Below are positions 1-39,541 of a DNA stretch of 64,000 nt, piece by piece; position 1 is the stretch's first letter; the number at the start of each line of letters is the position of its first letter. The translations under genes and the position numbers were made by a program. The notes under the pieces are model-generated. The model did not search any database. It was given only the letters and a program-made list of their open reading frames with translations, and was not told where the DNA came from. This stretch comes from Hypanus sabinus (Eukaryota), in assembly GCF_030144855.1 (NCBI RefSeq), contig NC_082710.1, forward strand, positions 153,078,001 through 153,142,000, in the 5' to 3' direction.

Positions 1-23
1 GGAACTCTGATACAATAGGAATC

Positions 24-850
24 TCTGAAGAGGTAGTGCTGAGCATACTTGTGGGCCCGAAGATAGATAAGTCCCAGGGTACTGAAAGAAATGGCAGAAG
101 TTATAGTAGAGGCTTTGGTGATAATTTACCAAAATGGAACAATAGAGTTGGGGGTAATGTATTAGCATGGATAAAGGATTGGTCGACTAATAGAAAGAAG
201 AGAGTTGGGATACCTGAGTGTTACTCTGGTTGTCAATCAGTGGTGAGTGATGTGTTGTGGTTGTCTGTTGTTCTGGGCTTGCAACTGTTCACGATATACA
301 TTAATGATCTGGAAGAGGGGACAAGTGTAGTGTATCTAAGTTTGTGTCAGGTATGGAAGCATCCTGAACTTTGTCAATAAGGATTAAGCAGGAATATCTG
401 ACTCCTGGAAACTGCTGAATTGCATGTATTTTAAGGTATAAAAGACCATACTTGTGCTTACTTTAGCAGAGTCTTTTAGTGGGCTCACTGTGGTCATGTA
501 ATTAAGTAATAGAACTGAATACTGGTATTTGTGTCTTTGTTTAATCAGTGATAGTAAAATTCTGCGACACTCAGAGTAGAGGGATATTGTTTTCAAATGG
601 AGATCAAGAAGTATTTCTTTTGCCAGAGAGCAGTACATCTGTGGAATTCGTTGCCACAGGCAACTTGGCAGCTGTGGAGGCCACATCTTTAGGTATATTT
701 AAAGCAGAGATTGATAGGTTCTCTATGGTCATGACATGAAGGGAGACGGTGAAGGCAGGACATTGGAACTGTGAGGGTAATGGACCAGCATGATGAAATG
801 GCGGAGCAGACTCGATGGGCCAAATGGCCCCTTTCTGCTTCTATATCTTA
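24..850 (+). mobile_element. Degraded CR1-type LINE ORF2 (RT and 3' end) fragments
   Basis: ORF 36..380 has CR1 RT-like motifs (WIKDWSTNRKKRVGI, LFTIYINDLEEG). 560-850 is a typical CR1 3' end (FKAEIDRF). Many indels. Confidence 0.8.
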
Positions 851-1604
851 TGGTTTTATCGAGTCTAGATGTATTCAGTTTAGTTACGTGCCTTGCTACT
901 AGTCAAATGCATGCCGCAGAATCAATCTTTGCTGAAACGCCCAGTGCACACTGATTCACCTCGATCAAACTGCTCATAAACAGCAATACCTGAAGCACAT
1001 GAACCCTAAAGTTCCCCAAAATGAGTCACAACCATGAGCCTCACCGATCAATCCCTGCAAAGTGGAACACAAGCCTCCTCCACTTTCCTCCAACCGCAGC
1101 TAGGAAAAGGGAGAGGAATAGCAGCCAAATGTGACAGATGGCGCCAAACACCAGCCTGGCCTCCACTCCCGGCCTCGTCCACTTCAACCTTGCTCAACCC
1201 CTCAGTCAGAGAAAAACAATGGAGCCAGTCATGGGCTCACAGTCCTCCTCCAAGCCTGCAGGCCATACACTCCAATCAACTCACTGTTTCAAATTAGGAG
1301 ATCCCTCATTACACCAGGTGGGAAACCCCTAATCATTTTGTTTTGGCAGCTCTCCCTCTTTCCCATATCAGGGGATCCCTCTGCATCTCAGATTGGGAGC
1401 TTCCTTACTGTCCAGATCAGGAGATTCCTCTCTGTCCCAGATTGGGAACACCATCAATCTGCTAGATCATCAAATCCTTCAGTATCTCGAATCATGACAG
1501 CCCACACCATCTCAGTCTCAGAGCCCCATAATCGTCTCAGACTGAGGTATCCCTTATGTTGCTGAGTTGGGAGCTCTTTCACCATTTCAGAATGTTCCAC
1601 TTGC

Positions 1605-1850
1605 CTTGCCTTTCAGATGCTTCTTTTCCAAGCTGAACAGCTCTTTTTAAGTACTGAATGCTGTACTTCAAGTCAGGCCCTTCAGTGAAATTGAGTTGGT
1701 TCATTCCAGCTTTGATTAATCCTTGGAGATTTGAATTTACGCTGATATCAAGGCTGACCGTTAGAAAATCTGGGATGTTGATTTTTAGAATCACATTGTC
1801 CGTATTTCCAGACGCTGTACAGCCCAAGATTCCCTGTATGTAGCTGATGT
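1605..1850 (-). CDS. MHC class I-like heavy chain, exon 3 (alpha2 domain), divergent
   Basis: Acceptor tactttacag (AG at 1852-1851). The 246-nt exon is phase 1/1 and open: (N)ISYIQGILGCTASGNTDNVILKINIPDFLTVSLDISVNSNLQGLIKAGMNQLNFTEGPDLKYSIQYLKRAVQLGKEASERQ(G). It matches class I alpha2 hallmarks: Q96, G100-C101, D122-F-L and the C-terminal L..GKE..ER. Donor AAG|gcaagt (GC-type) at 1604-1599. Confidence 0.85.
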
Positions 1851-1950
1851 CTGTAAAGTACCAACAGATTAATTAACATTCATGGCTGAAGCTTCCAACA
1901 TTAAATCCGATATCCATCTGGATAATGGCCTGCTAAATACGTAAATGCTA

Positions 1951-2469
1951 TGAGAGGTGATTGATAAATTTGTGGCCTAATGTAGAGGAGATGAGTTATA
2001 CAACTCTCATTACGTGCACGTGCAGTTCAACTCTTTGAGTGATTATGCAGAAAGTATGAAGTTAATAACTCATTGGGGTGATTGATAAGTTTGTGGCCTA
2101 AGGTAGAAGGAGTCAATTTTAGTAAACCTAGCACACCTATTTTTCAACATAGTCCCCTCCTTCTTTAACACACTTAGTCCAGAGGACGTGGAGCATATGG
2201 ATCGTAGACCTCCAGAAAGTGTCCACGCAGGGGTGATTGATAAGTTTGTGGCCTAAGGTGGAAGTAGATGAGTAATACAGCTCTCATTACATGCACATGC
2301 AGTTCAACTCTTTGAGCGATTATGCAGAAAATTTGAAGTTAATAACTCGCCAGTGGTGATTGATAAGTTTGTGGCCTAAGGTGGAAGGAAATGTTGAAAA
2401 ATAAATGTGCTAGGTTTTCTAAAATTGACTCCTTCTACCTTAGGCCATGAACTTATCAATCACCCTTCG
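1951..2469. mobile_element. Non-autonomous Tc1/mariner-like MITE with internally repeated terminal motif
   Basis: Flanked by TA at 1949-1950 and 2470-2471. The motif ggtgattgataagtttgtggcctaaggt occurs four times direct (~1957, ~2078, ~2232, ~2355) and once inverted at the right end (~2435-2465). A longer inverted repeat pairs ~2078-2150 with ~2392-2469. Confidence 0.7.
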
Positions 2470-2749
2470 TATGTGACAAAGAGGTGCACAAAGTAGTGGG
2501 TCACGGTGAGGGACTGTGTACAGTTAAGGCTGAGAGCATGGGGTGACAGCGTACCATATAGAACATTTGTCAGTGTGGCACAGATCACAGGGTCTTGTGA
2601 AATCAGTAATCAATGTGAGCAACTGTCTACATGGCAGGGTGGGAGGGGAAAGTATGAGGAGATTCTATTTGTCATTAAATGTTTTCAAACATACAGTGAA
2701 AAGCATTTGTATTGGTTACATCACAGCTGGTAGGTAAACGCCAAAGCCC

Positions 2750-3240
2750 TGAAAGACAAAAGGCTGAGGGGGTGGTGGACTCAGCCAGTCCCATCACAGG
2801 TACAGCTCTCCGCGTCGTTCAGGACATCTGCTGAAGGCAATATCCCAGGAAGACAACATCCATCATCTGGAACCACACCCTCCCTATCACCCAGGACAGA
2901 CCCTCATCTTGATGCTCCCACCAGGAAGGAGAGACAGGCCTAAGGACCCACACCTCAGGCTCCGACAAGAGCTCCATGTCCAACAGCACCAGGTTCTTTA
3001 ACCAACCAGAAAAGCCTTAAGATGACCCGAGATTATATTCTTATCTCTCTTATTCTTGCACAAATATTGTTACATTTATTCTGTTGCCTATCTTTGCACA
3101 TGTGCAGGTTGTGTATATTTATTTAACATTGACTCAATGCTAACATGTCCTGTAAAAGAGAATGCTGTTGCTGTAAAACAGTGATTTTATGGCAATTGTA
3201 CCCTGTATATGTAAGCCTATGATCAGAAATAAACTTGAGC
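2750..3240 (+). mobile_element. Rex1/Babar-like LINE 3' fragment, degraded
   Basis: Resembles the 3' end of the Rex1/Babar copies elsewhere in the window (agggtggtggactcagcc..., aataaacttgagcttga tail). No intact ORF. Confidence 0.6.
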
Positions 3241-4344
3241 TTGAACATATGCAGAGTGCACAGTACAGAGATCACATTGAAACAGTGTGCATACAAAGCA
3301 GGGGGCACATTGAAGGACTCTGTCAATACGTGGGCAGAGCAGGAGCTCAGTGAGAATCTGCGCTGTACAGTCTGCGCTGAACCATGTCCACTGCAGAGTT
3401 ACGGTGGAGAACTGTGAAAGCAACATGTTTGTAATAAGTGTCAATAAGCACAGAATGTGCAACACAGCAGTTCTGGTCGCTCTGTGATGGTGAGGCTTTG
3501 GAGAAGGTGCGGAAGATACTTACCAGATGCTGCCTGCATTGGACAGCATGTGCTATAACAAGAGATTGGACCAACTTGGGCTGTTTTCAGTCGACATCTG
3601 GTATCATTTTTTCCTTAGTTGAAATGTCTAATACAAGTGGGTATGTTCAATGCTGATGTGCAGGGTCAGTCTTTAACAGAGTGGCCCGTTCCTAAATTGT
3701 GCTGCCAGGGGTGGTGGAAGTAGCAGATACAAAGAGGGTGTTCAAGAAGCCTAGTTGAGCAGGAAATAGGAGGACATGGACATTGTGTATGCAGAAAGGA
3801 TTAGATTAGTTTGGCATTTGATTATTAATATAATTAGTTCAGCAGAACTTTGTGAGCCAAAGTGCCTATTCCTGTACTGTTGTGTTCTATGTTCTAATGC
3901 ATGGAGTCACAGCACCGAATTAGATCTGGACAGCGTCACTGTGGCAGGTGACTAGGTAAGAGCCATTGACATCGTAGTTCCAAACCATCCGAGACATTCC
4001 CAAGTCTGGAGTTGGGGAGTAGGCTGAGGAAAGGGGTTAGAGCCAGACAAGGCCTGTGTGGACAGTGGGTTTGATTTTCAGTGTTTCTCTGAAGAGGTCA
4101 GTGGGGAATGAAGACTGGATAATCAGCTTATTTTCAAGGGTCAGAACTTACCCAGATATTTAGGATGGAATTCTTGTAATTGGAGTTAAGGAAGGTAGAG
4201 TGCATAATGGAGATTTGAGAGACTTGAAAGAGTGAAGGACTTTAAACTTGATACAACATAATTGGATTAAATAGAAGATCAAGATATTGGCAATATGCAA
4301 GTCCCTGTGATACTCAAGGGGCAGTGTGGATCAAAGACACTCAC

Positions 4345-4593
4345 TAACGATTGAGGACAATTGCTGCAGATGTGTCATGATGAACTCATGAAGCCTGTCA
4401 GTTACTTCTTTCTGTTCTTTCTGGTAGTCAGTCAATAAGGCATCTGCGATCCACTGGTGCTTGACTTCTACCTCGTGGAGGGTGCTGTTGTAGTAGTCAA
4501 TCTGCAAGTCATCCAACATCACAATCCTGAAGAAGGCTGGCAGTTCAGGAGCGCTGAAGGATTGGAAGTAGAAATACATCAAGCCCTGTGAGC
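4345..4593 (-). CDS. MHC class I-like heavy chain, exon 2 (alpha1 domain)
   Basis: Long polypyrimidine tract plus tactcag acceptor (AG at 4595-4594). The 249-nt exon is phase 1/1: (G)SQGLMYFYFQSFSAPELPAFFRIVMLDDLQIDYYNSTLHEVEVKHQWIADALLTDYQKEQKEVTDRLHEFIMTHLQQLSSIV(N). It aligns by eye to class I GSHSxRYF...LPEF....VDDxQxxYYDS...W51...Y59. Perfect gtgagt donor at 4344-4339. Confidence 0.92.
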
Positions 4594-5089
4594 CTGAGTA
4601 AAAGGAGAGGGAGAGAGAAAGAGAGAGAGAGAAGTGTCAGAAAACAACAAAGGATGTTCACAATTTCTAAGGCATAACTCGGGAGTTTGATGGCACACTT
4701 GAATGGATTAATACACATCCAAGCAGACATCTGACTGGATTAGGCAGCACACCCACCCCCTTTATTAGCTCCCCAAACATGAGCAACAAACACTACTAAA
4801 CGTGCCTCATTGCTCTGGCCGTATACAAAATCCTACGCAGATACTCACCGAAGCCAATCCAACAGAACAACCCAAACCCCAGCACAAAGGAGGTCAAGGG
4901 CAGCAGGCAAACAGGAGCCCCAACTCCCACTATAGGGTTGCTTCTAATTCAGAGGCAAACATACTGGAATATGTGTCTGCCATGATAGAGAGGAAGCCAA
5001 GGTTCAAGGGGAAGCAAAAGAAATTTCCAGGGCATCAGTGTAGAAATTCTATTGGACTTGATCTTTCAAGAAAAGCCAGGAGATAATAA

Positions 5090-5645
5090 CAAGACACTAA
5101 TCAGGCCGCACTTAAAGCATTGTGTATAGTTTTGAGCCCCATATTTCAGAAAGGATGTGTTATCATTGGAGATAGTACAGAGGAGGTTCAGGAGGATGAT
5201 TCTGGGAATGAAGGGGTTAACACATGAGGTGTGTTTGGCAGCTTTGGACCTGTACTCACAGGAGTTTAGAAAAATGTGGGGTGATCTCATTAGAACCTAC
5301 CGAGTGTTGAAAGGACTTGTTGGGGTGGATGTGGAGAGAATGTCTCCTACAGTGGGAGTATCCAGAACGAGAGGTCACAGCATCAGAATTGAGGGGCGGC
5401 CCGTTAGAACAGAGGTAAGGAGGAATTTTTTTAGCCAGAGAGTATTAAATCTATGGAATGCTCTGCCACAGACTCTTAAGTCTGTGCATATATTTAAGGC
5501 AGAAGTTGATCATTTCCTGATGGTCAGATATGACGAGAATGCAGGAGTATGGGGTTGTGTGGAATCCGGATTCAGCCATGATGTGATGTGGAAAACTCGC
5601 AATGGGCTGAATAGCCTAAATCTGCTCCTATGTCTTATGGTCTTA
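5090..5645 (+). mobile_element. CR1-type LINE 3' fragment
   Basis: ORF 5157..5687: LEIVQRRFRRMILGMKGL...RTRGHSIRIEG...RRNFFSQRV.NLWNALP, the CR1 ORF2 C-terminus. Confidence 0.85.
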
Positions 5646-5649
5646 AAGG

Positions 5650-6005
5650 TGCAAGAGGCAGTCTGTAGTGTTGCATTGCTGATGTAGGCTCAGGATTATT
5701 CAGGTTGGTTCAAGAACTGATGTCTGTAGGAAAGTAGCTGTTCCTGACCTGATGTTGTGGGATGTCAGTCTTCTGTGCCTCCTGCCCGACAGAAGCAGCA
5801 TGAAGACTGCATGATGTGAATGGTGGGAATCCTTGATGGTAGATGCTGCCTTCTTGAGGCAGTGCCTCCTGTAGATACTGCTAGTGTTGGGGAAGGATGT
5901 GCCCATGGTGGATCAGGCTGTGTCCACCATTCTCTGCAGCTCTTGTCTTCCTGTCTATTGTAGTTTCTGTACCAGGTTATGATGCAGCTAGTCAGTAATG
6001 TCAAG
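5650..6005 (-). mobile_element. Rex1/Babar-like LINE 3' fragment
   Basis: ORF 5765..6004 (LLTSCIITWY...) is homologous to the SILTGCITAWYGN motif of the other Rex1/Babar copies. Confidence 0.7.
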
Positions 6006-6629
6006 ATTTTAAAGAAAGTGATTCTTCTACAGAGTCAGTACAGTCCTCTGGGTCCATCAACCACCTCTTTACACTCATCTAAACTTATTCTTCCCTCATT
6101 TGCATCAACACCTTCCCAGATTCCACCACTCACTCACATCTTAGGGCGATTTACAGCAACCAATTAGCCCACCAATCCACCCATCTTTGGGGTGTGGGAG
6201 GAATTCAGAGCAACCAGGAGAATCCTATGATATCTTTCTCTGGGATTACAACACCGGGCAGTGCAGAATAGGGATATGCCCTTCAGCCCAATATGTTGTG
6301 CCAAATTAATTAAACCAGTAACTAAATGCCTAATTATTCTAAACCCTTCTGCCAATGTCCATATCCTTCCATTCTCTGCAATTCATGCACCTTTCTAAGT
6401 GTATCTTAAATACCTCTGTGGTATGTGCTTCAACCACCAGCCCTCACAGCTGATTCCAGACACGAACCACATAAAATCAACATTGCTCTACAAATTTCCT
6501 CTGAACTTATTCCCTTCCACATTAAATACATGCCCTCTAGTGTTAGATAGCTTGACCCTGGGATGCTCTTGTAGTCTTATAAACATCTATCAGATCTTTC
6601 CCAGTCTCTGCCACTCCAAAGAACAACTT

Positions 6630-7250
6630 CTCTTCCACATACGCATCATCAAGGATCTCACGTGGTCTGTAAATACCGCCTGTGTGGTGAAAAAGGCACA
6701 ACAGTATCTGTTTCACCTCAGACAGTTGAAGTTTATTATGACCCCCTTCAAAATTCTAAGAATTTTCTGTAGGGGCATGATTGAGAGCATCCTGACGGGC
6801 TGCATCACTGCCTGGTACGGGAACTGTACCTCCTTTAATCACAGGACTCTGCAGAGAGTGGTGTGGACAGCCCAGCACACCTGTAGATGCGATCTTCCCA
6901 CTATTCAGGATATTTAGAAGGACAGGTGTGTAAAACAGGCCAAAAGGATCATTGGAGACCTGAGTTACCTGAAGCACAAACTGTTCCAGCTGCTATCATC
7001 TGGGAAATGATATCGCAGCATGAGAGCCAGGACCAACAGGCTCCGGGACAGCTTCTTCACCAGACCATCAAACTGCTTAGTTCATGCAGACACACTGTAT
7101 TTCTATGTTATATTGACTATCCTGTTGTACATAATATTTATTATAAATTTCTATAATTGTACATTGCACATTTGAACAGAGACATAAAGATTTTTACTCC
7201 TCTTGTATATGAAGGATGTAAGTAATAAAGTCAATTTAATTCAATTCAAT
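6630..7250 (+). mobile_element. Rex1/Babar-like LINE 3' fragment inserted into an older antisense CR1
   Basis: IIKDLTWSVNTACVVKKAQQYLFHLRQL...ESILTGCITAWYGNC. Ends in an (aattc)n tail at ~7232-7250. CR1 antisense sequence lies on both sides. Confidence 0.8.
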
Positions 7251-7299
7251 TCTTAAGTCCTCTAATCCAGGAAGCATTCTGGAAAATCTCTTCTGCACT

Positions 7300-9645
7300 T
7301 GGATACCGACTAGAGATGGGGCAGTGTTGGATCTCCTGTTAGGGAATGCGATAGGTCAGCTGACAGATGTATGTGATGGGGAGCACTTCGGGTCCAGTGA
7401 TCACAATAGCATTAGCTTCAATATAATTATGGAGAAGGACAGTATAGGACCTAGAGTTGAGATTTTTGATTGGAGAAAGGCTAACTTTGAGGAGATGCGA
7501 AGGGATTTAGAGAGAGTGGATTGGGTCAAGTTGTTTTATGGGAAGGATGTAATAGAGGTCATTTAAGGGTGAAATTATGAGGGTACAGAATCTTTATGTT
7601 CCTGTTAGGTTGAAAGGAAAGATTAAAGGTTTGAAAGCACCATGGTTTTCAAGGGATATTAGAAATTTGGTTCGGAAAAAGAGGGATGTCTACAATAGAT
7701 ATAGGCAGCATGGAGTAAAGGAATTGCTCGAGGAATATAAAGAATGTAAAAGGAATCTTAAGAAAGAGATTAGAAAAGCTAAAAGAAGATATGAGGTTGG
7801 TTTGGCAAATAAGGTGAAAGTAAATCCGAAAGGTTTCTACAGTTATATTAAAAGCAAGATAGTGAGGGATAAAATTGGCCCCTTAGAGAATCAGAGTGGT
7901 CAGCTATGTGTGGAGCCGAGGGAGATGGGGGAGATTTTGAACGATTTCTTCTCTTCGGTATTCACTAAGGAGAAGGATATTGAATTGTGTAAGTTGTGGG
8001 AAACAAGTAAGGAAGTTATGGAACCTATGACAATTAAAGATGTGGAAGTACTGGCGCTTTTAAGAAATTTAAAAGTGGATAAATCTCCGGGTCCTGACAG
8101 GATATTCCCCAGGACCTTGAGGGAAGTTTGTGTAGAGATAGCAGGAGCTCTGACGGAGATCTTTAAGGTGTCATTAGAAACGGGGATTGTGGCGTATTGC
8201 TCATGTGGTTCCATTGTTTAAAAAGGGTTCTAGAAGTAAGCCTAGCAATTATAGACCTGTCAGTTTGACATCTGTGGTGGGTAAATTAATGGAAAGTATT
8301 CTTAGAGATAGTATTAATAATTATCTGGATAGACAGGATCTGATTAGGGGTAGCCAGCATGGATTTGTGCGTGGAAGGTCATGTTTGACAAACCTTATTG
8401 AATTTTTTGAAGAAGTTACAAGGAATGTTGACAAGGGTAAGGCAGTGGATATAGTCTATATGGACTTCAGCAAAGCCTTTGACAAAGTTCCACATGGAAG
8501 GTTAGTTAAGAAGGTTCAGTCATTAGGTATTAATGCTGGAGTAATAAAATGGATTCAACAGTGGCTAGATGGGAGAGGCCAGAGTGTAGTGGTGGATAAT
8601 TGTTTATCGGGATGGAGGCCGGTGACTAGCGGGGTGCCTCAGGGATCTGTTTTGTGCCCAGTGTTGTTTGTAATATACATAAATGATCTGGATGATGGGG
8701 TGGTAAATTGGATTAGTAAGTATGCCGATGATACTAAGGTAGGAGGTGTTGTGGATAATGAGGTGGGTTTTCAAAGCTTGCAGGGAGATTTATGCCAGAT
8801 AGAAGAATGGACTGAATGTTGGCAGATGGAGTTTAATGCTGAGAAGTGTGAGGTTCTACATTTTGGCAGGAATAATCCAAATAGAACATACAGGGTAAAT
8901 GGTAGGGCATTGAGGAATGCAGAGGAACAGAGAGATCTAGGAATAACAGTGTATAGTTCCCTGAAGGTGGAGTCTCATGTAGATAGTGTGGTGAAGAAGG
9001 CTTTTGGAACGCTGGCCTTTATAAATCAAAGCATTGAGTACAGAAGTTGGGATGTAATGTTAAAATTGTACAAGGCATTGGTAAGGCCAAATTTAGAATA
9101 TTGTGTGCAGATCTGGTCACCGAATTATAGGAAAGATAGCAATAAATTAAGCAGAGTGCAGAGACGATTTACTAGGATGTTACCTGGGTTTCAGCACTTA
9201 AGTTACAGAGAAAGGTTGAACAAGTTAGGTCTCCATTCATTGGAGCGTAGAAGGTTGAGGGGGGATTTGATCGAGGTATTTAAAATTTTGAGAGGGATAG
9301 ATAGAGTTGACGTGAATAGGCTGTTTCCATTGAGAGTAGTAGAGAATCAAACGAGAGGACATGATTTGAGAGTTAGGGGGCAGAAGTTTAAGGGAAACAC
9401 GAGGGGGTATTTCTTTACTCAGAGAGTGATAGCTGTGTGGAATGAGCTTCCTGTAGAAGTAGTAGAGGCCAGTTCAGTTATGTCATTTAAGGTAAAATTG
9501 GATAGGTATATGGACAGGAAAGGAGTGGAGGGTTATGGGCTGAGTGCGGGTAGGTGGGACTAGGTGAGATTAAGAGTTCGGCACGGACTAGGAGGGCTGA
9601 GATGGCCTGTTTCCGTGCTGTGATTGTTATATGGTTATATGGTTA
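7300..9645 (+). mobile_element. 5'-truncated CR1-type LINE with near-intact reverse transcriptase ORF2
   Basis: ORFs 7324..7566, 7577..8221 and 8187..9563 (458 aa; NYRPVSLTS, DFSKAFDKVPH, SGVPQGSVL, KYADDTK) are separated by frameshifts. The 3' tail is tatggtta repeats at ~9628-9645. Confidence 0.95.
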
Positions 9646-11900
9646 ATGCATCTGTTATCTCTTCAGAAACCTCTCTCAAGACTCTGGGATGTAGTCCATC
9701 TGGCTCAGGTGACTTATCCACCTTAAGATCTTTGAAGTTGTCTCGTAATTTTCTTTGCATTAGCAAAAACACCCACTCCTGCTGTCTGACACTCATGGAC
9801 CTCTGGCACACTGCTAGTGTCTTCCACAGGGAAGACAGATGCAAAGTACCCATTAAGTTCCTTTGCCATTTCTTTGTTCCACATTACTACCTCACCAGCA
9901 TGATATTCCAGTGGTCTACTATCAAATCTCACTTCTCTTTGACTCTTTATATAACTGAAACAACTTTTGGCGCCCTGCATTATATTATTGGCTATTCAGC
10001 CCTCTTATTTAATCTTTTCCCTTCTTTTAGCCTTTTTAGTTATTTTTCTTGGATTTTAAAAGCTTCTCAATCATCCAACTTCCCACTCACATTTTTTACA
10101 ATATATGCCCTTTCTTTGACTTTTATGCAGTCCTTAACATTCTTTATCAGCCACAGTTGCCTACCCCTGCTAATTGAGAACTTCTTCCTCTGTGGCACAT
10201 ATCTATCCTGTGCCTTGTGAACTATTCCAAGAAACTTCAGCTCTGCTGTCATCCCCACTAGTATTCTCCTTCAATCCACCTGGGCAAGCTCCTCTCTCAT
10301 GCCTCTGTAATTCCTTTTATACCATTGCAATACTGATACATGAGTTATGTTTCTCCCTCTCAAATTGCAGTATGAATTCAATCATATTTTGATCACTGTC
10401 TCCTAAAGAATCTTTATGTTAAGCTCCCTAATAAGATCTGGGTTTTTGCAGCGTACCTGTAGATGTGAACTTCCCACTATTCAGGACATTTTAAAAGACA
10501 GGTGTGTAAAAAGGATCATCAGGAACCTGAGTCACCCCACCCACAAAATGTTCCAGCTGCTACCATTTGGGAAATGATACCACAACATAAAAGCCAGGAC
10601 CAAGGGACAGCTTCATCCATTAGGCCATCAGACTGTTTAATTCATGCTGACACAACTGAATTTCTATGTTATATTGACTATCTTATTGTACACACTATTT
10701 ATTATAAATTACTATAAATTACAACATTGGATGTTTAGATAGAGATGTAATGTAAAGATTATGAAGGATGTAAGTAACAAAGTCAATTCAATACACAACA
10801 CCCAATCTATGATAGCCTTTCCCTGAGTAGGCTCAAACACAAGCATTCTCTGACACTATGTCACCTCTTTCTAGAGATGTAATTCCAACTCTTACCAACA
10901 GAGCCACACCATTGCCTATGCCTTTTTGCCTGTCCTTTCGATACAAAGTATATCCCTTGATGGTAAGCTCCCAACTTCAGCCTTTTTTCAGCCACAGCTC
11001 CGTGATCCCCACAATGTCATTGAGACCAATCTCTAATTGCACCACGGGTTCATCCACCTTATTCCAAATACAACACCTTCAGTGCTGCGTTCTTCACCCT
11101 TTTGAATTTTGCCTCTGTGGTACAATTTAACTCTTTGCTCTGTCTGTATTTGTACCAATCATTGTCTTGTACTTCCTTACATTCATGTTACACCAATTAT
11201 CTTCTTGTAAACCTGCTGGCTCATCCTCAGCTCCATCACCCTGGTTTCCATCCCCCTGCCATATTCATTTAAACCACTAGCAACAGCTCTAGTAAATTTG
11301 CCAGCAAGAATATTGGTCCCCCTTGGATTCAAGTGCAATCTGACCTTTTTCTACAGGTCTCACCTGCCCCAGAAGAGGGCCCAATTATCCAGAAATCTGA
11401 ATCCCTGTCCCCTGCTCCAATTCTTCAGTCACACATTTACCTGCCACCTCATTCTATTCCTATCCTCACTATCATGTGGAACAGGCAGTAATCCTGAGAT
11501 TACTGCTCTTAAGGACCTGCTCCTCAGCTTCCTTCCTAACTCCCTATATTCTTTTTTCAGGACTTCGTCCCTTTTCCTTCCTATATCATTGATACCAATA
11601 TGTACCGTGACTTCTCTCTGCTCACCCTCCCTTTTCAGGATATTGTGGACGTGTTCAGACACATCTCGGACCCCGGCACCTGGGAGCCAAACTACCATCT
11701 GTGTTTCCCTTTTGCATCTACAGAATCACCCATCTGTCCCCCTGCCTACAGAATCTCCTATTACTGCAGACATCCTCTTCAGTTCCCGACCCTTCTGAGC
11801 CACAGGGCCAGACTCAGTGCCAAAGGCACAACCACTGTTGCTTCCCCATGTACTGTTGCAGCTGGGCATCTCTGATAATGGTTTATTTGCTCTGATGTCT
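9646..11900 (-). mobile_element. Older antisense CR1 (ORF2 fragments plus ORF1 esterase-like fragment), interrupted by a Rex1/Babar tail at ~10445-10795
   Basis: KVDKSPEPDGLHPRVLREV (9635..9853). ORF 11429..11698 reads VVWLPGAGVRDV...VHIGINDIGRKRDEVL, an SGNH-esterase-like CR1 ORF1. Confidence 0.8.
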
Positions 11901-13150
11901 CAGTCTGCAGTTGTTTTTGTTCATTGACTTTGTGTATTGTCATTCTGTGTTTTCCCTGAATATGCCTGCTTGTAATGCTGTTGCAAGCAAGATTTTCATT
12001 TTATCTATATCTAACCATTCTTATGCATATGGCAATATATATGACTGAACATGACCTAAAATCTCCCTGAACGTCCTAAATTCCCTGCTACCTAGGGTAA
12101 CAGAAACAGCAATATTGTTCTTTGTGATTTATTGCTCCTATTTCATCTGCTTCCTTTTTCATCATATTTCTGTAAGCAGCCAGTGCAGGCACAGAACACT
12201 GTCCCATAGTCTGCCATGTGTAAACATACTGACCAACCGCCCCAACACCAGAGCTTTGATGAACTCGCCACTCATGTCCAGTGCCAATTTCCTCCACTTC
12301 CCGCAGCATCCGCCATGAGCGGTGTTAAGCTGGCCACTCACTTGAGAGGGGCCTTTTACAAAACCTCCCAGAGGTGCTTGTGCATAAAATGCATCGATGT
12401 TCTCCCAGTCTATGACCACAGCAATCAACAAAACTTAGAGCCAACTCTTGATGCACTTTGAAAATAGGATGAAAAAGAAAAGAAAAAGATGCCAGTCAAC
12501 AGGCCAGGCAGTATCGAGGGGAAAGAGGAACTGTTAATGTCTCAAGTTAAAGACGGAAAGCTCCGTCGTTCCGATAGCATGCAAGGAGAGAGAAATAGAA
12601 CTAATGTTTCAGGGCCAAGATGGAAACTTGCAACAGTTCCCGTAGCATCTGTTGGGAGACAAACAATAAATGTTTCAGATTCGGGAGCCTGAATCAGAAC
12701 TTGGAATGAGAGAAATCAAGTTAGTTTTTGTTAGCAGAGAAGTCCTTCACACATAAGGCACAGAAAGAGGACACTCGGACCGCTATGTGGGTGCAGACCC
12801 TTAAGGAACAGAGGTATTTCTCTGGTATTGTGAAACAGACTGATATAACGTGGAAGTTAAGGGATAGTTAAACTCATACTAATTACTTTAATGTGATGCC
12901 TCTGTTAAGATTGTGGGACTTTCCTCTTTGGAAACTGGCGACAATTCCTACCCACCGGTGAAACATATTCAAGGATCATTTTGCCCCGAGTTTATCGACT
13001 CCAGAAATGTCGCAAGAGTGAAATAGAACACAGGAGTGCGATGAGTTCGTCTTCCCGTCTGATGCAGCCACAGCCAGGAACTCTGAAAGATTTAAAGGCG
13101 AGTTTCCCGACACAACCCCCAACCATCGCCGTCACATACCCTCGCCTCAC

Positions 13151-13226
13151 CTGTCTGGCTTCCCGCGACAGAGCAGAGAGAGAACGCGGTGACAAGGAGC
13201 GATACCAGTCCGGTGCAACACTCCAT
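13151..13226 (-). CDS. MHC class I-like gene exon 1 (signal peptide)
   Basis: ATG at 13226-13224 in good Kozak context (gcaATGG). Encodes MECCTGLVSLLVTAFSLCSVAGSQT + G (76 nt, phase 1) with donor CAG|gtgagg at 13150. It joins in frame to the alpha1 exon (G+GC = Gly) and lies in a CpG-rich unique island. Confidence 0.8.
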
Positions 13227-13760
13227 TGCGACGACTCCTCGCATCGACTGAACCCTGATCGTTAGTCAGTGAAGTGCTGAGGGTGGAGTTAGATTCACAG
13301 ACGCGGCTTGGTGTAAACAAGGTTATTTACAGGGCAGCCAGTAACTGAAAATCCTCCTACATAAATGGACTGTGGGCGGAGCGGAGATTCGGCTGAACGC
13401 GGGAGGGAGCGGAGCCAAACCACTTCCAGTTGTGTTGCATCAAATCCGGCGAGAGGTGATTTCAGGAAATACCCATTGTCCCGAGGGAAGCTGCTCAGCA
13501 CAAACCTTCTCAAATTACTGGGTAAAACAAAACTTCTAGAGGATCTCGGCGGGCCAGGCAGCAGATGTGAAGGGAAAAGCAGCGACAACACAAAATGCCC
13601 ACTGTCCATGTCCCTCCACAGCTGCGGGCAGACCCGCTGATTTATAGTCATACTTCATGAAACAGGACCGGTTAGGGAATGATCACAGAATAGGGTTCTT
13701 CCGCCACTGGACAGGGAGTGGCCAGGTTCGCTGAGAGAGCCCCTCAATTATTGTAGCAGA
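13227..13760 (-). promoter_or_regulatory. Putative CpG-rich proximal promoter / 5' UTR of the class I-like gene
   Basis: CpG density is visibly higher than in the rest of the window. GC box gggcgg at 13374-13379, forkhead-like gtaaaca and tatttac at ~13312-13330, ETS-like cacttcc at ~13421. It lies immediately 5' of the leader exon. Confidence 0.55.
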
Positions 13761-15605: not shown

Positions 15606-17875
15606 ATAGAACCATAAAACACTACTGCACAAAAAGCAGGCCATTTGGCCCTTCTAGTCTGTGCTGAAACTTTATTCCGCTAGTCCCATTGACCTGCATC
15701 CAGTCCATAACCCTCCAGACCTCTCCCATCCATGTACCTATCCAATTTATTCTTAAAATTTAAGAGTAAGCCTGCAGTTATCATGTCAGATGGCAGCTCG
15801 TTCCACAATTCTACCACTCTCTGAGTGAAGAAATTCCCCCTAATGTTCCCCCTAAACCTTTCCCCTTTCATCCTGAAGCCATGTCCTCTCATATTTATCT
15901 CTCCTAACCTAAGTGGAAAGAGCCTGTTCACATTTACTCTGTTTTACCCCTCATAACTTTGTAAACCTCTATCAAATCTCCCCTCATTCTTCTACACTCC
16001 AAGGAATAAAGTCCTAACCTGTTCAATCTTTCCCTGTAACTCAACTCCTGAAGACCCCAGCAACATCCTCATAAATCTCTGCACTCTTTCAATTTTACTG
16101 ATAGCCTTCCTATAGTTTAGTGACCAGAAATGTACACAACACTCCAAATTTGGCCTCACCGATGTCTTACACAACTTCCCCATAAAATCTCAACTCCTAT
16201 ACTCAATACTTTAATTTATGAATGCCAGGATGCCAAAAGCTTTCTTTACAACCCTGTCTACCTGTGACACCACTTTCAGGGCATTATGTATCTGAACTCC
16301 CAGATCTCTTTGTTCCTTCATACTCCTCAGTGCCCTACCATTTACTGTGTATGTCCTACCTTGATTTGTCCTTCCAAAATGCAACACTTCACACTTGTCT
16401 GCATTAAATTCCATCTGCCATTTACTGGCCCATTTTTCCAGTTGGTCCAGATCCCTCTGCAAGATTTGAAAGCCTTTCTCGCAGTCCACAACACCTCAAA
16501 TCCTAGTGTCATCAGTAAACTTGCTGATCCAATTTACCACATTATTATCTAGATCATTGATATAGACAACAAACAACAATGGTCCTAGCACAGATCCTTG
16601 AGGCACACCACTAGTCATAGGCCTCCAGTCTGATAAGCAATCATCCACTACCAATCTGTCTTCTCCCAAACAGCCAATTTCAAATCCAGTTTACAACCTC
16701 TCCATGGATACCCAGTGCCTGAGTCTTCTGAATTAACCTCCCATGTGGGACCTTATCAAAGACCTTATCAAGCCCATGTAGACAACATCCACAGCTTTTC
16801 CTTTGACTGCTTTCTTGGTAACCTCCTTGAAAAACCCTACAAGATTTGATAAACACGATCTACCACGCATGAAGCCATGCTGACTATCCTTAATCAGCCC
16901 TTGGCTGTCCAAATACTTCTAATTCCGATCTCTCAGAACACCTTCCAATAATTTACTTACTACTGACATCAGGCTCACCGGCCTGTAATTACCCGGTTTA
17001 CATTTGGAGCTTTTTTTAAACAATGGAACAACATGAGCTACCCTCCAATCCTCTGGCACTATACCCGTGGTGAAGAACATTTTAAATATTTCTGCCAAGG
17101 CCCCTGCAATTTCTACACTAGTCTTCCTCAAGGTCCAAGGAAATATTATGTCAGGCCCGGGGGATTTATCAACCTGTAAGGCAGCAAGCACCTCCTCCTC
17201 TTTAATCTCTATATGTTCCAAGACACTGCTGCTTGTTTCCCTTCCTTCCATATATGCTATGCCAGTTTCCTAAGTAAATACTGATGCAAAAAAATTGTTT
17301 AAGATCTCTCCCATTTTGTCAGGCTCCACCCAAAGATGACCACTTTGATCTTCTAAGGGACCAATTTTGTCCCTTACTATCTTTTTACTCTTAATATACT
17401 TGTAGAAACCCTTCAGATTTACCTTCACATTATCTGGCAAAGCAACCTCATGTCTTCTTATTGCCTTCCTGATTTCCTTCTTCAGTATTTTCTATACTCT
17501 TCAAGAACCTCATTTGTTCCTTGTTGCCTATACCTGCTATATGCCTCTCTTTTTTTCTTAACCAGATCGCCAAATTCCCTTGAAAACCAAGATTCCCTCT
17601 GCTTGTTAACTTTGCCTTTAGTCCTGGCATGAACATGCATACTCTAACTCTCAAAATTTCACCCTTGAATGCCTTCCACATTCTGAACAAATTCTTGCCA
17701 GAAAACAACTTATCCCAATCCACTCTTCCAAGATCCTTTCTTATTTCCTTAAAATTGGCCCTTCTCCAATTTAGAGCCTTAACTCAAGGACCAGACCTAC
17801 CCTTATCCATAATTAACTTGAAACTAATGACATTATGATCACTGGACCAAAACTGTTTGCCTACACATACTTCTG
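15606..17875 (-). mobile_element. CR1-type LINE (fragmented ORF2) nested in the Penelope element
   Basis: ORFs 16919..17251 (VDKSPGPD..VPEDWRVAHVVPLFKK..NYRPVSL), 16211..16489 (WQMEFNADKCEVLHFG) and 15680..15931 (C-terminus). Confidence 0.9.
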
Positions 17876-18118
17876 TCAGCCCACATTCTTACTTTGACTT
17901 CTTATATATTTTTCTCCAGTCCTGATGAAGGGTCTCGATCTGAAACTTAGACTGTTTACTCTTTTCCATAGATGTTACCTGACCTGCTGAGTTCCTCCAG
18001 CAATTTGAGTGCATGGCAACAATCGTATTAATTTTAGCAAATATAATAGAGCTCTAAACATTCACTGTGACTCTATGAATAAAAAGACATTGTATGGTTT
18101 ATTCTTGTAAATATTTTT

Positions 18119-21100
18119 CTTTCTTTTTAAATCTTTTCATTAATTTTAAACAAACATAAATGAAACATGAATACAAGAGAGTTTGAGACTACATAATTAA
18201 TAGGTTAAATACACATTCAATTAGATGATAATCCATATATATTAACCTCCCAAACTCATAGTAATTACGAACAAAAGGAGTAAGTTAAAAAAAATCCCCA
18301 AAAAAAGAAAAGAAAAAAATTAACCAACATGGCCCATTGCATTATGTCAAATACATACAATAGTGTCAATAACTCCATACCTCCATCCAAATAATTAAGG
18401 ATAATAAAAGTGTTTAGGAAATGTCAGTTTAATTCCTATGAAAATATTGAATAAATGGTCTCCAAGTTTCTTCAAATTTAATTGAAGGATCAAAGACAAC
18501 ACTTCTAATTTTTTTTCTAAACTCAAACAAGAAATAGTTTGAGAAAACCACTGAAATATAGTTGGAGGATTAATTTCTTTCCAATTCAATAGGATAGATC
18601 TTCCAACCATTAATGTAACAAATGCAATCATTTGTCGAGATGAAGGGGATAAACAACTATTATCCACCATTGGTAAACTAAAAACTTGCAGTAATAGGAT
18701 GTGGTTGCAATTTTATATTCAGAACTGTTGAAATAATACCGAACATATCTTTCCAATAATTTTGCAAACAAGGGCAAGATCATAACATGTGGGTCAATGA
18801 AGCAACTTCAAAATGACATCTGTCACAGGTTGGATTAACGTAAGAATAAAATCGAGCAAGTTTATCCTTAGACATATGAGCTCTATGTACAACCTTAAAT
18901 TGTATTAGGGCATGTTTAGCACAAATAGAAGAGAAATTGACTAATTGTAAAATTTTCTCCCACTGCTCAGTGGGTATAAGACAATGAAGTTCTTTTTCCT
19001 ATTCCTTCTTAATTTTTTCTGATACTTCTTGCTGTATTTTCATGATCATATTATAAGTGATGGCTACTAAACCCTTCTGGCAAGGATTCAGAGCTAAAAA
19101 AAATTCTGTAACTTCTGTTGGACAAAATTTCAGAAAAGACTGTAACTTATTATTCAAGAAATTTCTAACTTGCAAATATCTAAAAAAAGGCTTATAAGTA
19201 AATTCTATTTATTAGAGAGCTGTTCAAAGGACATAAAACTATTATCTAAAAATAGATCATGAAAACACGTTATACCTTTTGTTTTCCATAATACAAAGAC
19301 TTGATCCATAAAAGAGGGCCAAAAAAAAGTTAGATATAATAGGGCTTGATGAGATAAACTTATTCAAGCCAAAAAAAATTTTGAAATTGAAACTATATTC
19401 GCAATGCATGTTTAACTATAGGATTAGTTATTTGTTTATTCAATTTAGATAAAGAAAAAGGAAGTGAAAATCTTAAAATTGAAAATAATGAAAATAACAG
19501 ATTTACATTCCAAATTTACCCATTGTGGGAAGCTGCTATAATTGATTCTTGTGTCCAAAATATTAAATATTGTATATTAACTGCTCAATAGTAAAATCTC
19601 AGGTTTGGCAAAGCCAAACCACCCTCCTTTTTAGGCTTCTGTAAATATTTTTCGCTTAGTCTAGCATTTTTATTCTGCCACACATACAAGGATATTTTGG
19701 AGTCAATAATATCAAAAAAAGATTTATGAATAAAAATTGGTAATGCTTGGAATAAATATACCATATGGTCATACCATCATCTTAAAAGCATTAATTTGAC
19801 CAACCAATGACAAAGATAATGGGGACCACCTGTAACAAGTTGCTTAATTTGGTCAATTAAAGGTGAAAAATTAACTTTAAGTAAATCCCTATGTTTCTTG
19901 GTAAATTTAATACCCAAATAAGTAAAATGATATGTGACAACTTTAAATGGCAAATGTTTATAAATTGAAACCTGCATATTTAATGGAAATAATTCATCCT
20001 TATTAAAATTCAGTTTGTAACCAGAAAAGCTACTAAACTGAGTAAGCAAGGATGAAATAGCAGGAATAGATCTCTCAGGGTCAGATATGTATATTAACAA
20101 ATCATCAGCATATAATGATAACGTTATAAGCCCCTTCCCCATGGGTAATACCCAAAATATTAGGTGATTCACGAATGGCTATAGCTAAAGGTTCCAAAAC
20201 AATGTCAAATAGTAAAGGACTTAAAGGACAGCCTTGCCTTGTACCATGGAATAACTGAAAAAAGGAGATCTTTGATTATTGGTAAAAACTGAGGCCAAAG
20301 GTTTATAATATATTAATTTAATCCATGATATAAATTTCAAACTAAAATTAAAATGTTGCAACGTATTAAATAAATATGGCCATTCAACTCTATCAAATGC
20401 TTTTTCAGCATCTAAGGAAATGACACATTCTGGTATTTTGGAGGAAGGCGTATAAATAATATTAATCAATTTTCTAATGTTAAAAGATGAGTAATGGTTT
20501 TTAATAAATCCAGTCTGATCTTTAGAGATAATTCGAGGTAATGTATTTTCTAATCTAGTGGCCAAAATTTTACTAAATATCTTAGAGTCCATATTCAGCA
20601 AGGATATAGGCCGATAGGATGCACAGTCAGTGGGGTCTTTATCTTTTTTAAGAATTAAAGAAATAGAGGCATCATAAAAAGATTGTTGCAATTTACCTGC
20701 AGTTAACACATCTTTAATGATTTTACAAAGCCAAGGAGAGAGTATAGAGGAAAGGGATTTTAAAAATTCTGCAGTATAACCATCTGGACCAGGGGCTTTA
20801 CCGGAATTCATTGAAAAAATAGCCTCTTTTATTTCAGTTTCCATAATAGGTTCATCTAGAAATACACTATCTTCTGTTGTTAATTTTGGGATATTCAATT
20901 TTCTTAAAAATTCATCCATTATAGAAGAATCCTCAACAAATTCTGATTGATATAAGGAATTTTAAAATCTTGAAAGGCTTTATTTATCTATTTATGATCG
21001 ATTGTCAAAGTGTCATCTCGTTTACGAATCTTAGTAATTTGTCATTTAACTGAAGCAGTTTTCAATTGATTAGCCAATAATTTGCCAGATTTATCTCCAT

Positions 21101-23954
21101 GTACATAGAATTGGGTAATTGTGTTCTAGATTTAATAAACTGATTTTCAATTGAAGAGGATAATAACAAACTGTGCTCCATTTGAAGTTCAACTCTTTCT
21201 TTATAAAGTTCTTTGCTGGGGATCATGGAATAAATCTTATCAATTGCTTTGATTTTATCAATCAATGTTAATATTTTAGAATTAGTTTGTTTCCTAACTC
21301 CAGCAGAGTATGAAATAATCTGTCCATGAATAAATGTTTTAAAAGTGTCCCATAAAATTCCACTAGACATCTTTGCTGTAGAATTTGTTGAGAAAAAAAA
21401 TCAATTTGTTGTTTAATAAAATTAAGAAAGTCTGAGTCCTGCAATAATAGAGTTGAACCTCCAAGATTTAGCATTAGAAGATGAATCCATTGTCTTAATA
21501 GATAGCTTCAAAGGTGCATGGTCAGAAATGGTAATGGAGTCATATTTACAATCAATGACATCTGTAAGTAAACGATAATAATCAATTCTTGAACAATTAT
21601 GATAAACATGAGAAAAGTATGAAAATTCTTTGTCATTGGGCTGTAAAAAAAAGCCTAATTTTGGAAATTCCAGAATCAACCATATAGGAATTAATAAGAG
21701 AGGCCGATTTATTTGGAAGAGCTTGGGTGGGCTTAGATCTATCCATCGAACGGTTTAAGCAACAGTTAAAATCCCCACCCATTATCAGCATGTACTGATT
21801 CAAATTAGGAAAGGATGTAAATAGACACTTACAAATTCAGGACAATCAGTGTTTGGAGCATAAACATTAACTAAGACAACTTCTTGATTAAAAAGTAAAC
21901 CAGTAATAAGCAAAAATCTACCTTGTGGGTCCAAAATTGTTTAACAGTGTATAAAGGAGGTTGAAGAATCTATAAAAATGGAAATGCCACTTACTTTGGC
22001 TTGGGAATTCGAGTGATTTTTCCAAAACCTAAAAAAACGTTGACTTCCTCACATGAGTCTCTTGACGAAAACAATATTAGCATTCATTCTGTGGAATACT
22101 TTGAACATTTTTTTCCATTTGATCGGATGTTTTAAACCATCAGTATTCCAAGAAACAAAATTAATAATCATTCATGTTGCCAATACTTATTACAATTAAC
22201 ACATAAGGTTAAAAAAAGATGAACTCATGAATCCGGAAGAGGGATGTAAGTACAGGGAGGAACCGGAAGTTATGACACTGCAACCATTTTTGTAGTTTCG
22301 ATCAGCCCATGAAGTAAAACTAAGCGTGACGCAAGCAAAAGGAAAGACCCCTCCCCTCCCTCCACCCTCAAAACCCCAGAAAAAAGCCAGAAGGAGGGAA
22401 GTAGGCAATCTAATACTAAATTTACCCCCATGTCTCAAGACGGCAACTCAAACAAGAAAGTAAAAAAAATACAAACCACCCATATTTTAAGAAAGAGTTG
22501 GTAGAACTAAGATTGAACTGTAAAATTAGTATTATCTATATAAAACAAAAGGATTTAAAAAAAGAAAAAAAACTAAAACATTAAAACCCATAAATGGATG
22601 ATATTGTATTAGTGTTTTAAAAGAAAGTCCTTAAACTTATCCAGACACATCGAAACAGATGTGATGTATCCAAGCACTAAGGTCTTTGGGAAAAAGAAAC
22701 TACATCTTAGAAAAGTTTTTTATTTAAAAAATCTTAATATCTAAGCATTAAAATATTTTAAAAAGTGTTTTTGAACTTAAAAGAAAAACCTAATGAGTTA
22801 CTTTCAGAACTAACAAAATAATAATATAAAAAGAACAAACTCAGGATAAACAAAAAAAAGGACCTTTACCGTGTGTAAGAAATACACTTTTAGCCATCTC
22901 GTAAAAAATCATCAAATTACAAAAGATCCAAATCTACAGACTAATTATTACATTAGTCAACTCGTAGTTAAAATAAAGTATTATTCTTCAAGGAATCTTT
23001 CAGCATCCGCTGGAGATTTGAACAGCCGGTAAGTCCCATCTTTGAGAGTAACTCTCATTTGTGCTGGAAATAATAGCGCTTGCTTGTAGCCTTTCTAATG
23101 AATTTCCGACATAATCGATTTAAAAGCCATACTTGCCCTTAAAACTTCGGGACTATAATCTTCCAGAATACGAAATTGGAAATTTTGAAAGCTGATCATA
23201 TCCTTTTTCCGAGCAGCGCAAATCAAACATTCTTTTGTATGAGGATAATGAATCCGGAGAATCTCTGGTCGTGGTTTCGTACCTGAAGCTGGTTGAAAAC
23301 GTGAAATGCGATGTGCACGGTCGATTAATGGAGGGGTATCCAGTACTTCTGAGCCGAAGACGTCCATTAAAAATTTAGAGAAAAATACAGTGAGATCACC
23401 GTTCTCAAAATTTGCCGGAAGCCCAATTATCCGGAGATTTTGTCTTCGAGAGCGGTTTTCAAGATCAGTGATTTTAGATTTATAACGATCCAGCAGTTGA
23501 GAAGTCGAATCTTGCTGTTGTTGCAGAGTTTCAATTATGCGATCTCTCTGGTGAGCGGCTTCTTCAAGAACTAAAATTTTTGCTTCTTGTTGTTTTGAAT
23601 CCAGTGTAAGTGATTGAATTTTTGCATTGACTGTCTTTAAAATTTCATCGAGTGTAGAAAGCTTTGGGGTTAATTTATTCTCCAGTTTTTCAAGTCTTTT
23701 GTCCATAAGTTTCGCAATTGCTTCCAAAGTTAACGGTTCTTTCGACTGTTTCGATTCCTTAGGTTCTTGTGGTTTAGACATTTTAACGAGTTGAAAATGA
23801 TTCAAACAGTTGAAAAAGATTTCATAAGTATAGACCCCTTTAAAATAGGTATAAACAGGTCAATTAGGGGGTGGTTTTAGGTAGAAAACAAGTAAAAGGA
23901 TTGGAATGAATCCCAAAGCAGTTTCACTCCATAAGCGCCATCTTGAGACTCCTC
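18119..23954 (-). mobile_element. Full-length L1-like LINE (5' UTR, ORF1, disrupted APE-RT ORF2, AT-rich 3' UTR) with 18-bp TSD
   Basis: TSD attcttgtaaatattttt at 18101-18118 and 23955-23972. ORF1 23095..23805 has a coiled coil plus LENRSRRQNLRIIGLP and DRAHR, and is prematurely stopped. ORF2 pieces: SDHAPL, SGKAPGPDGY, YRPISLLN, SLDAEKAFDRVEW, LYADDLL. Confidence 0.95.
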
Positions 23955-24104
23955 ATTCTTGTAAATATTTTTATTATGCATAAAAGTTTATTTTGATATT
24001 TTTTAAAAAAATGAAACAGGCCTTTCTGTGCAAGCAAGATGCCCATGTTCAATCCATTTGCCAGTGTTTAGCCCATAACTTTCCAAACCATGTACCTGTA
24101 GTAC

Positions 24105-29575: not shown

Positions 29576-29869
29576 GGCTAACACGAGAGGGCACATTTTT
29601 AAGATGCTTGGAAGTAGGTACAGAGATGATGTTAGGGGCAAAGTTTTTATACAGTGAGTGGTGAGTGCATGGATGCAATCTGCCAGTGACAGTGGTGGAG
29701 TCGGATATGATAGGGTCTTTTGAGAGACTCCTGGATAGCTACATGGAGCTTAGAAAAACAGAGGGCTATGAGTAACTCTAGGTCATTTCTAAAGGAAGTA
29801 CATGTTCGGCAAAGCATTGTGGGCTGAAGGGTCTGTGCTGTGTGCTGTGCTACAGGTTTTCTATGTTTC

Positions 29870-35960: not shown

Positions 35961-35984
35961 GGGATCTATGAGAAAAGAAACACT

Positions 35985-39494: not shown

Positions 39495-39540
<46 letters not shown>
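35985..39540 (+). mobile_element. 5'-truncated L1-like LINE (ORF2 fragments) with (GAAA)n tail
   Basis: ORFs 35984..37015, 37009..37476, 37487..38143 and 38263..39060 (RT and C-terminal CDRC motif). The composite to 40502 is flanked by gagaaaaga(a/t)acact at 35970-35984 and 40503-40517. Confidence 0.95.
39496..39540 (+). repeat. (GAAA)n microsatellite tail of L1
   Basis: About 11 GAAA units directly after aataaaaagattta. Confidence 0.95.

Positions 39541-39541
<1 letters not shown>

Follow-up and report, generated by a model that had tools for sequence, protein, structure and literature searches.

Does a stretch of stingray DNA that reads like the groove half of a major histocompatibility complex (MHC) class I molecule belong to a gene and, if so, to which class I lineage and in what state of repair? 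The question is raised by 64,000 nucleotides of the Atlantic stingray, Hypanus sabinus (NCBI RefSeq assembly GCF_030144855.1, contig NC_082710.1, positions 153,078,001 to 153,142,000), the whole of which we call the window. Here an earlier note had read three exons as the leader, α1 and α2 of a highly divergent, non-classical class I chain, hidden among transposable elements and perhaps of an undescribed lineage. We found that the exons are those of a RefSeq gene and that structure searches and phylogeny assign it to UFA, an elasmobranch class I lineage with a crystallised nurse-shark member. It stands out from that lineage by a shortened, disulfide-less α2 domain. It is probably an intact and working, though derived, UFA gene, with a groove that would not present peptides.

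The three exons belong to an annotated gene

All coordinates are window positions, and the gene lies on the minus strand throughout; P-numbers are working labels for the proteins compared in this analysis. The spliced product, 196 residues from the ATG at 13244, is 100% identical to residues 1–196 of P0028, the 313-residue Hypanus sabinus “MHC class I-related gene protein-like isoform X1” (XP_059826640.1/XP_059826641.1). This identity and the splice sites confirm three phase-1 exons and one open frame in the places where the earlier note had put them. Its start codon needs a small correction: the ATG at 13226 is in frame, and the 190 residues that follow from it are exactly residues 7–196 of P0028, but the annotated start (MRGVVAMECC...) lies 18 nt upstream, at 13244. 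The gene cannot be called hidden either: RefSeq isoform X1 already models exactly these junctions, and an isoform X2 accompanies it.

Exon 1 (13151..13244, minus strand) carries the start codon and signal peptide and corresponds to P0028 residues 1–31 plus the first base of codon 32; it measures 94 nt from 13244, or 76 nt from 13226. Its donor (CAG/GTGAGG, with the GT at 13150-13149) is in phase 1 and opens intron 1 (4594..13150, 8,557 bp). Exon 2 (4345..4593; 249 nt, 83 codons, phase 1 at both ends) encodes the α1 domain and is recovered by P0028 as tblastn query at E 7e-53. It is preceded by a long polypyrimidine tract and CAG/G, and its donor is TTA/GTGAGT. Beyond intron 2 (1851..4344, 2,494 bp), exon 3 (1605..1850; 246 nt, 82 codons) begins after the acceptor TTTACAG/AC and encodes the shortened α2 domain. 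The donor of intron 3, CAAG/GCAAGT, is of the consensus GC-AG type rather than GT, with the GC dinucleotide at 1603..1604. Since the RefSeq protein reads on as ...SERQ/VAPEAQV past exon 3, this exon must end at 1605, G1605 being the first base of the Val codon, and use of the GC donor is thereby confirmed.

All 196 codons within the window are open, and every junction of the leader, α1 and α2 exons is in phase 1. That these three parts lie on one chain in separate phase-1 exons upholds the class I type proposed at the outset. An N-I-S glycosylation sequon sits at the α1/α2 exon junction. A tblastn search with nine family and classical proteins found no class I exon in the window beyond these three, and neither it nor a three-frame scan of positions 1-4400 on the minus strand, intron 2 included, found an alternative α2 or α3 exon. 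The α3 and membrane exons of the gene sit off the window, beyond coordinate 1; α3 is known from the RefSeq protein, in which the C1-set model (PF07654) matches residues 211–280 at E 4.5e-13.

At the 5′ end, a CpG-rich patch (13000..13400) covers exon 1 and the proximal promoter, with a CpG observed/expected ratio of 0.88–0.97 versus 0.14–0.58 in 4-kb bins across the window. Regular expressions for the interferon-stimulated response element, the CCAAT/Y-box and the cAMP response element/X2 box had no match in the 770 bp upstream of the ATG, which is a weak negative.

Isoforms without α2 recur in this family. RefSeq annotates one for the window gene (isoform X2, P0024), the Hemitrygon akajei ortholog likewise has one (isoform X2, XP_072885798.1, P0001), and a third (P0019) comes from another Hypanus paralog. 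The reading frame survives such skipping because every exon is in phase 1. GC-AG introns are enriched among alternatively spliced genes, and the GC donor behind the α2 exon may therefore promote its omission: a weak donor of this kind would favour exon skipping and so give rise to the in-frame α1–α3 isoform that is annotated in both stingray species.

Structure and phylogeny point to UFA

To which class I lineage does this chain belong? Against the PDB (phmmer), P0028 matched 8gm8_A at E 1.2e-46 over residues 32–284, the whole ectodomain; the next matches were MR1 at 3e-24, 9ch4_A (UGA) at 3.2e-20, and classical or CD1 chains at 1e-14 to 1e-21. Entry 8GM8 is titled “Crystal structure of shark nonclassical MHC CLASS I, UFA” (released 2024-11-27), and its sequence is that of a Ginglymostoma cirratum protein (P0046); 9CH4 bears the same title for UGA (released 2026-03-18). 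A Foldseek search with the AlphaFold2 (AF2) model of the window gene also ranked 8GM8 first (E 1.1e-22, compared with 5e-16 for 9CH4), and every one of the top 50 PDB matches (E<=2e-15) was a class I or class I-like chain. In the reverse direction, a shark UFA ortholog used as query returned only UFA-family proteins at E<=1e-10.

The domains contribute unequally to these matches. The α1 domain alone found 8gm8_A at E 2e-11 in the PDB and, weakly, Pfam MHC_I at E 7e-4. Designed trefoil-knot proteins, which appeared as α1 relatives at E 3e-4, were dismissed as helical, low-complexity E/K/L-rich matches. Searched by itself, the α2 exon gave no meaningful match in either Pfam or the PDB; its homology emerged through the α2 of the paralogs (tblastn E 1e-17 to 5e-30) and in the full-length comparison. 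On the full P0028, Pfam MHC_I (PF00129) scored 23.9 bits (E 3.4e-5), below its 28.3-bit cut-off and over profile positions 2–103 only, which bears out the description of the chain as highly divergent and non-classical. The crystallised UFA falls under the same cut-off, at 26.8 bits.

Family members were recovered by an exhaustive HMMER scan with α1 and by two word-indexed searches. Each of nine shark genera has one copy. Among batoids, Amblyraja and Narcine have one each and Pristis two, with at least five in Mobula birostris, at least five in Hemitrygon akajei and at least four in Hypanus sabinus. We inferred a maximum likelihood tree from 30 proteins, with a classical-type class I protein of bamboo shark as the only outgroup. 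In it, the single-copy shark clade that contains nurse-shark UFA (P0046/8GM8) has the batoid clade as its sister group, an arrangement that follows the species tree. One duplication inside the batoid clade gave an “A” gene (P0003/P0020/P0036, auto-named CD1d-like) and a “B” group; mobulids and dasyatids each expanded the “B” group on their own. The window gene and Hemitrygon P0022 pair at 100/97 support inside the six-gene dasyatid clade that is starred in the tree.

By solved structure and phylogeny, then, the gene is assigned to UFA as its nearest lineage, in which it is a derived batoid representative. RefSeq already contains the gene model, and the lineage has both a name and a released crystal structure. 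The earlier note had held that tight clustering with a described lineage would tell against novelty and leave the gene itself untouched; such clustering is what we observed, and the suggestion of an undescribed lineage is given up while the gene stands. UFA has been termed “single- or low-copy” (PMC12562908); stingrays and manta rays have an expanded set of copies rather than a single one. We found no description of the myliobatiform expansion, the short-α2 sub-clade or the progressive loss of cysteines in the literature accessible to our search, which also yielded no paper naming 8GM8 and no primary UFA/UGA paper.

Members of this one lineage go by a range of automatic RefSeq names: zinc-alpha-2-glycoprotein-like, SLA class II DQ beta-like, CD1d-like, H-2 Q7-like, hereditary hemochromatosis protein homolog and MR1-like. 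The lesson for annotation is that uninformative automatic names conceal a single lineage. A 654-residue protein of Mobula birostris (P0005), in which the α1 query matches two separate stretches, is apparently a multi-unit class I prediction. We also considered a special tie between UFA and the teleost multi-unit class I predictions that the α1 search had brought up (P0002, P0004 and others) and dropped it, those proteins being nearer to classical shark class I than to UFA.

Groove anchors and α2 cysteines

Residue positions were taken from a MAFFT alignment with classical shark class I. The window gene retains Y7, D29/D30, W51, Y59, Q96, G100, C101 and D122; it has Gln for W60, Ile for R/Y84 and Ala for Y171, and its α2 contains no Trp at all. 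These retentions and losses are among those that the earlier note had picked out by eye. Among the classical peptide-end anchors (Y7, Y59, R/Y84, T143, K146, W147, Y159 and Y171), Y7 and Y59 are kept and positions 84 and 171 are changed as above; the α2 helix positions 143–159 are not reliably alignable. With peptide-end anchors lost, a non-peptide ligand or none would be likely, as the earlier note had suggested. The anchor losses are common to the remaining UFA lineage. The part specific to this copy is α2.

An equivalent of C101 is present (ILGC). At the C164 position the codon is AGC, encoding Ser, so that the C101–C164 disulfide is absent and the C101-type cysteine is left unpaired. The context here is KYSIQYL in the window gene versus TCIEWL in classical class I and NCIQSL in a paralog, and in HMMER alignments the Ser lies opposite a Cys of both MR1 (EEECIAWL) and UFA (PRCVENL). 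A typical UFA-family α2 has 87-92 residues and four cysteines, namely the canonical C101/C164 and a second pair, a pattern drawn from the present alignment and not a published definition. In the AF2 model of a control paralog the second pair lies in and after strand 3. Of the 28 family members aligned, 24 carry at least four cysteines in α2, compared with a single one in the window gene and in its ortholog. Five dasyatid genes (P0022, P0025, P0026, P0027 and P0028) share a four-residue α2 deletion that removes the third cysteine and takes out the fourth α2 strand in this short-α2 sub-clade. The window gene and its Hemitrygon ortholog additionally lack the second and fourth cysteines, which leaves only the C101 equivalent.

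We then compared AF2 models of the window gene and of P0023, a Hemitrygon paralog with a full α2, both computed on the same 28-sequence family alignment. In the window gene the predicted local distance difference test (pLDDT) was ~70–77 in α1, 38–59 in α2 and 80–93 in α3, with a mean of 64. The order of strands and helices was that expected for the MHC fold except for α2 strand 4, which was not modelled, and residues 150–173 were below 50 pLDDT. In P0023, α2 reached 73–81 pLDDT and the fourth strand appeared at 154–157. Because the control was well modelled on the same sequences, the drop in confidence is specific to the shortened α2 and not a consequence of a shallow alignment.

It is thus its shortened, disulfide-less α2 that makes the window gene stand out. 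Across this gene and its relatives the α2 cysteines number four, three or one, with and without strand 4, and this natural gradation could be used to probe what the platform needs for folding, for pairing with β2-microglobulin and for ligand capture. Some stingray UFA copies are remodelling or eroding the α2 half of the groove.

A working gene or a decaying one

Which of these, remodelling or erosion, applies to the window gene? Two readings would remove the question altogether. That the frames are chance openings in repeat-rich DNA, with no gene at all, we regard as scarcely credible: the window is mostly transposon debris, but the product exactly equals a RefSeq protein, orthologs and paralogs of the window gene occur in at least six batoid genera, and phase-1 junctions with canonical splice sites run throughout. 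It is also very improbable that the gene represents an undescribed chondrichthyan class I lineage apart from UAA–UGA. Such a lineage would account for an α2 that by itself matches nothing in Pfam or the PDB and for an overall identity to nurse-shark UFA of ~35%. Yet the match to 8GM8 is more than 20 orders of magnitude ahead of other solved class I molecules, intermediate paralogs bridge stepwise to UFA in a tree that mirrors the shark/ray split, and low Pfam scores are lineage-wide, the crystallised UFA included.

There remains the reading that this is a transcribed but decaying UFA paralog, in which constraint on the groove was lost after the stingray duplications, α2 is unfolded, and the gene is becoming a pseudogene or is functional only as the α1–α3 isoform. 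We judge this unlikely, though a good deal of the evidence bears on it. Three of the four α2 cysteines of the lineage and the fourth strand are gone, and the AF2 confidence of α2 collapses relative to the paralog control. Identity between the window gene and its ortholog P0022 is 78% in α1, 87% in α2 and 90% in α3. For the neighbouring pair P0025/P0026, from the same two species, the corresponding values are 94%, 93% and 95%; the window-gene pair thus diverges two to four times faster, ~3.7x in α1 (22% vs 6%) and ~2x in α2 and α3. The α1 identity to paralog P0023 is 77% versus 89% for the two orthologs, which places the excess α1 change mainly on the Hypanus branch. Two of the changes, H34Q and G56V, strike α1 residues that are otherwise near-invariant. 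Two sequons have also been lost in the window gene, NIT in α1 and NAT (now KAT) in α3, and are counted toward decay. Its PF00129 score makes it the sole sub-cut-off copy among the dasyatid proteins tested, the Hemitrygon ortholog scoring 29.4 bits and P0023 28.7. Finally, α2-less isoforms are annotated in both species.

Against decay stand the open codons and good splice sites of the window gene, the likewise open α2 of the ortholog, whose 3-codon deletion is in frame, and the CpG-rich patch at the promoter. Indels throughout the sub-clade are in frame. Between the orthologs α2 is better kept than α1, unlike a freely drifting exon, and most of the 18 α1 differences are conservative. The window gene departs from the family at five of 57 near-invariant columns, within a family range of 0–7. 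We therefore keep to the reading of an intact, working but derived UFA gene as the probable one. Several of the points above nonetheless weigh against it: the faster divergence of this pair, the H34Q and G56V changes, and the unpaired cysteine and low-confidence α2, which fit a decaying domain too. To these should be added that the RefSeq models are the sole witness to expression of the gene, that the tree has only a classical outgroup, with UBA, UCA, UDA, UEA and UGA compared solely through PDB E-values, and that lipid binding by UFA traces to a personal communication in a review (PMC12562908).

A possible role for the product

If the gene works, what might its product do? The full α1–α2–α3 chain, with its tail-less hydrophobic C-terminus, would pair with β2-microglobulin at the cell surface like other UFA molecules, giving a UFA-type surface glycoprotein that presents no peptides. 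The groove could then be a remodelled, hydrophobic pocket of the lipid type. Alternatively, it might offer no usable ligand pocket, and the molecule would serve as a surface marker read by receptors of innate-like lymphocytes. UFA has been described as very similar to CD1 in the binding region (PMC10751288, citing unpublished data) and as binding CD1d-like lipids (PMC12562908, personal communication); these two sources report lipid ligands for UGA as well. UFA has been regarded as the counterpart of CD1 in cartilaginous fishes, and this would date lipid-type antigen presentation to the origin of jawed vertebrates.

The C-terminus is a shared trait. Nearly all UFA-family proteins of sharks and rays (P0028 and 25 others) lack a cytoplasmic tail: small residues lead into a final hydrophobic stretch of ~16–20 residues, for example ...GEPHCAGPMLGMMTVFAIIFGVM. 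Such an end looks like a glycosylphosphatidylinositol-anchor signal or a tail-less anchor.

A bolder proposal, which we put forward tentatively and rate as less likely than not, concerns the class I platform itself. A conserved sub-lineage of dasyatid UFA genes, dating back at least to the divergence of Hypanus and Hemitrygon, would have remodelled it by deleting one α2 strand and dropping both α2 disulfides, and would regularly make α2-less isoforms by way of the weak GC donor. Provided that the protein still folds and is displayed on the cell, selection would be maintaining a natural class I molecule whose half-groove has seven strands and no disulfide. The MHC fold would thereby gain a new structural variant, one that might act without a ligand as a marker for innate-like lymphocytes.

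Repeats around the gene

The description of the introns as rich in transposable elements was well founded. Intron 1 holds fragments of long interspersed nuclear elements (LINEs) antisense to the gene, at 7577-9563, 5157-5687 and 6399-6917, all on the plus strand. The first includes a reverse-transcriptase open reading frame (ORF) at 8187-9563 (+; RVT_1 E 5e-33), and the last is a C-terminal piece of LINE type, labelled ALKBH8_N by Pfam. Several further LINE copies, with long interrupted ORF2-like frames, lie on both strands in blocks of GC 0.31–0.35 at 16200-24900, 35900-40100 and 58900-62600; the blocks at 35984-39060 and 58985-62585 belong to one family and are nearly collinear with each other.

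Two other elements lie farther from the gene. An ORF of 328 residues at 28671-29657 (+) resembles a gag-type gene of a retroelement; it encodes a SCAN domain (E 3.8e-10) and also has a zinc-knuckle motif of the CCHC-like type. At 51889-53866 (+), five adjacent ORFs on the same strand, the first with a BED-finger-like motif, resemble one interrupted transposase-type gene; a Pfam search with two pieces of this run gave no match.

Comparison with known systems

How does the window gene compare with its nearest relatives? Nurse-shark UFA (8GM8) is its best match in sequence and fold. The two share a short α1 C-terminus, the MLDDLQI.YYDS motif, the loss of the R/Y84 and Y171 anchors and an α3 of the C1-set type, and they group in one family in the tree, which has a classical outgroup. 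They differ in that identity drops to 21% in α2, where nurse-shark UFA has 91 residues and four cysteines and the window gene has 82 residues, one cysteine and no fourth strand. UFA is single-copy in the sharks examined, whereas the window gene is one of at least four Hypanus paralogs.

Closer relatives are found in Hemitrygon akajei. P0022 (“MHC class I-related gene protein-like isoform X1”) is the sister sequence, at 87% identity overall, and has the same short, single-cysteine α2, the same C-terminus and the same α2-skipping isoform. It differs by its in-frame 3-codon deletion, which covers the C164 position, and by retaining the α1 NIT sequon, H34 and G56, which the window gene has changed. 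The paralog P0023 shares 96% identity in α3 and has almost the same leader and C-terminus. Its α2, in contrast, has 87 residues and four cysteines, is 55% identical and is well modelled by AF2.

CD1 and the window gene resemble each other in the class I-like layout of the chain, and both have lost the peptide anchors. The UFA lineage has been reported as CD1-like and lipid-carrying (PMC10751288, PMC12562908), and the sister paralog P0003 is auto-named ‘CD1d-like’ in RefSeq. CD1 chains match P0028 at ~1e-14 to 2e-21, however, mainly through α3 and no better than MR1 or classical chains, and the CD1-type Pfam model MHC_I_3 has no match in P0028. CD1 also has a sorting tail; the window-gene protein has no cytoplasmic tail and hence no endosomal sorting motif. 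On these sequence comparisons the window gene is not a member of CD1.

Shark UGA (9CH4) and classical shark class I of the UAA type (P0017) share the fold, the domain order and the residues Y7, D29/D30, W51, Y59, Q96, G100 and C101 with the window gene. Their matches are weaker (E 3.2e-20 for 9ch4; blastp 4e-13 for P0017), and the classical molecules retain the full set of termini anchors as well as the C101–C164 bond, which the window gene does not.

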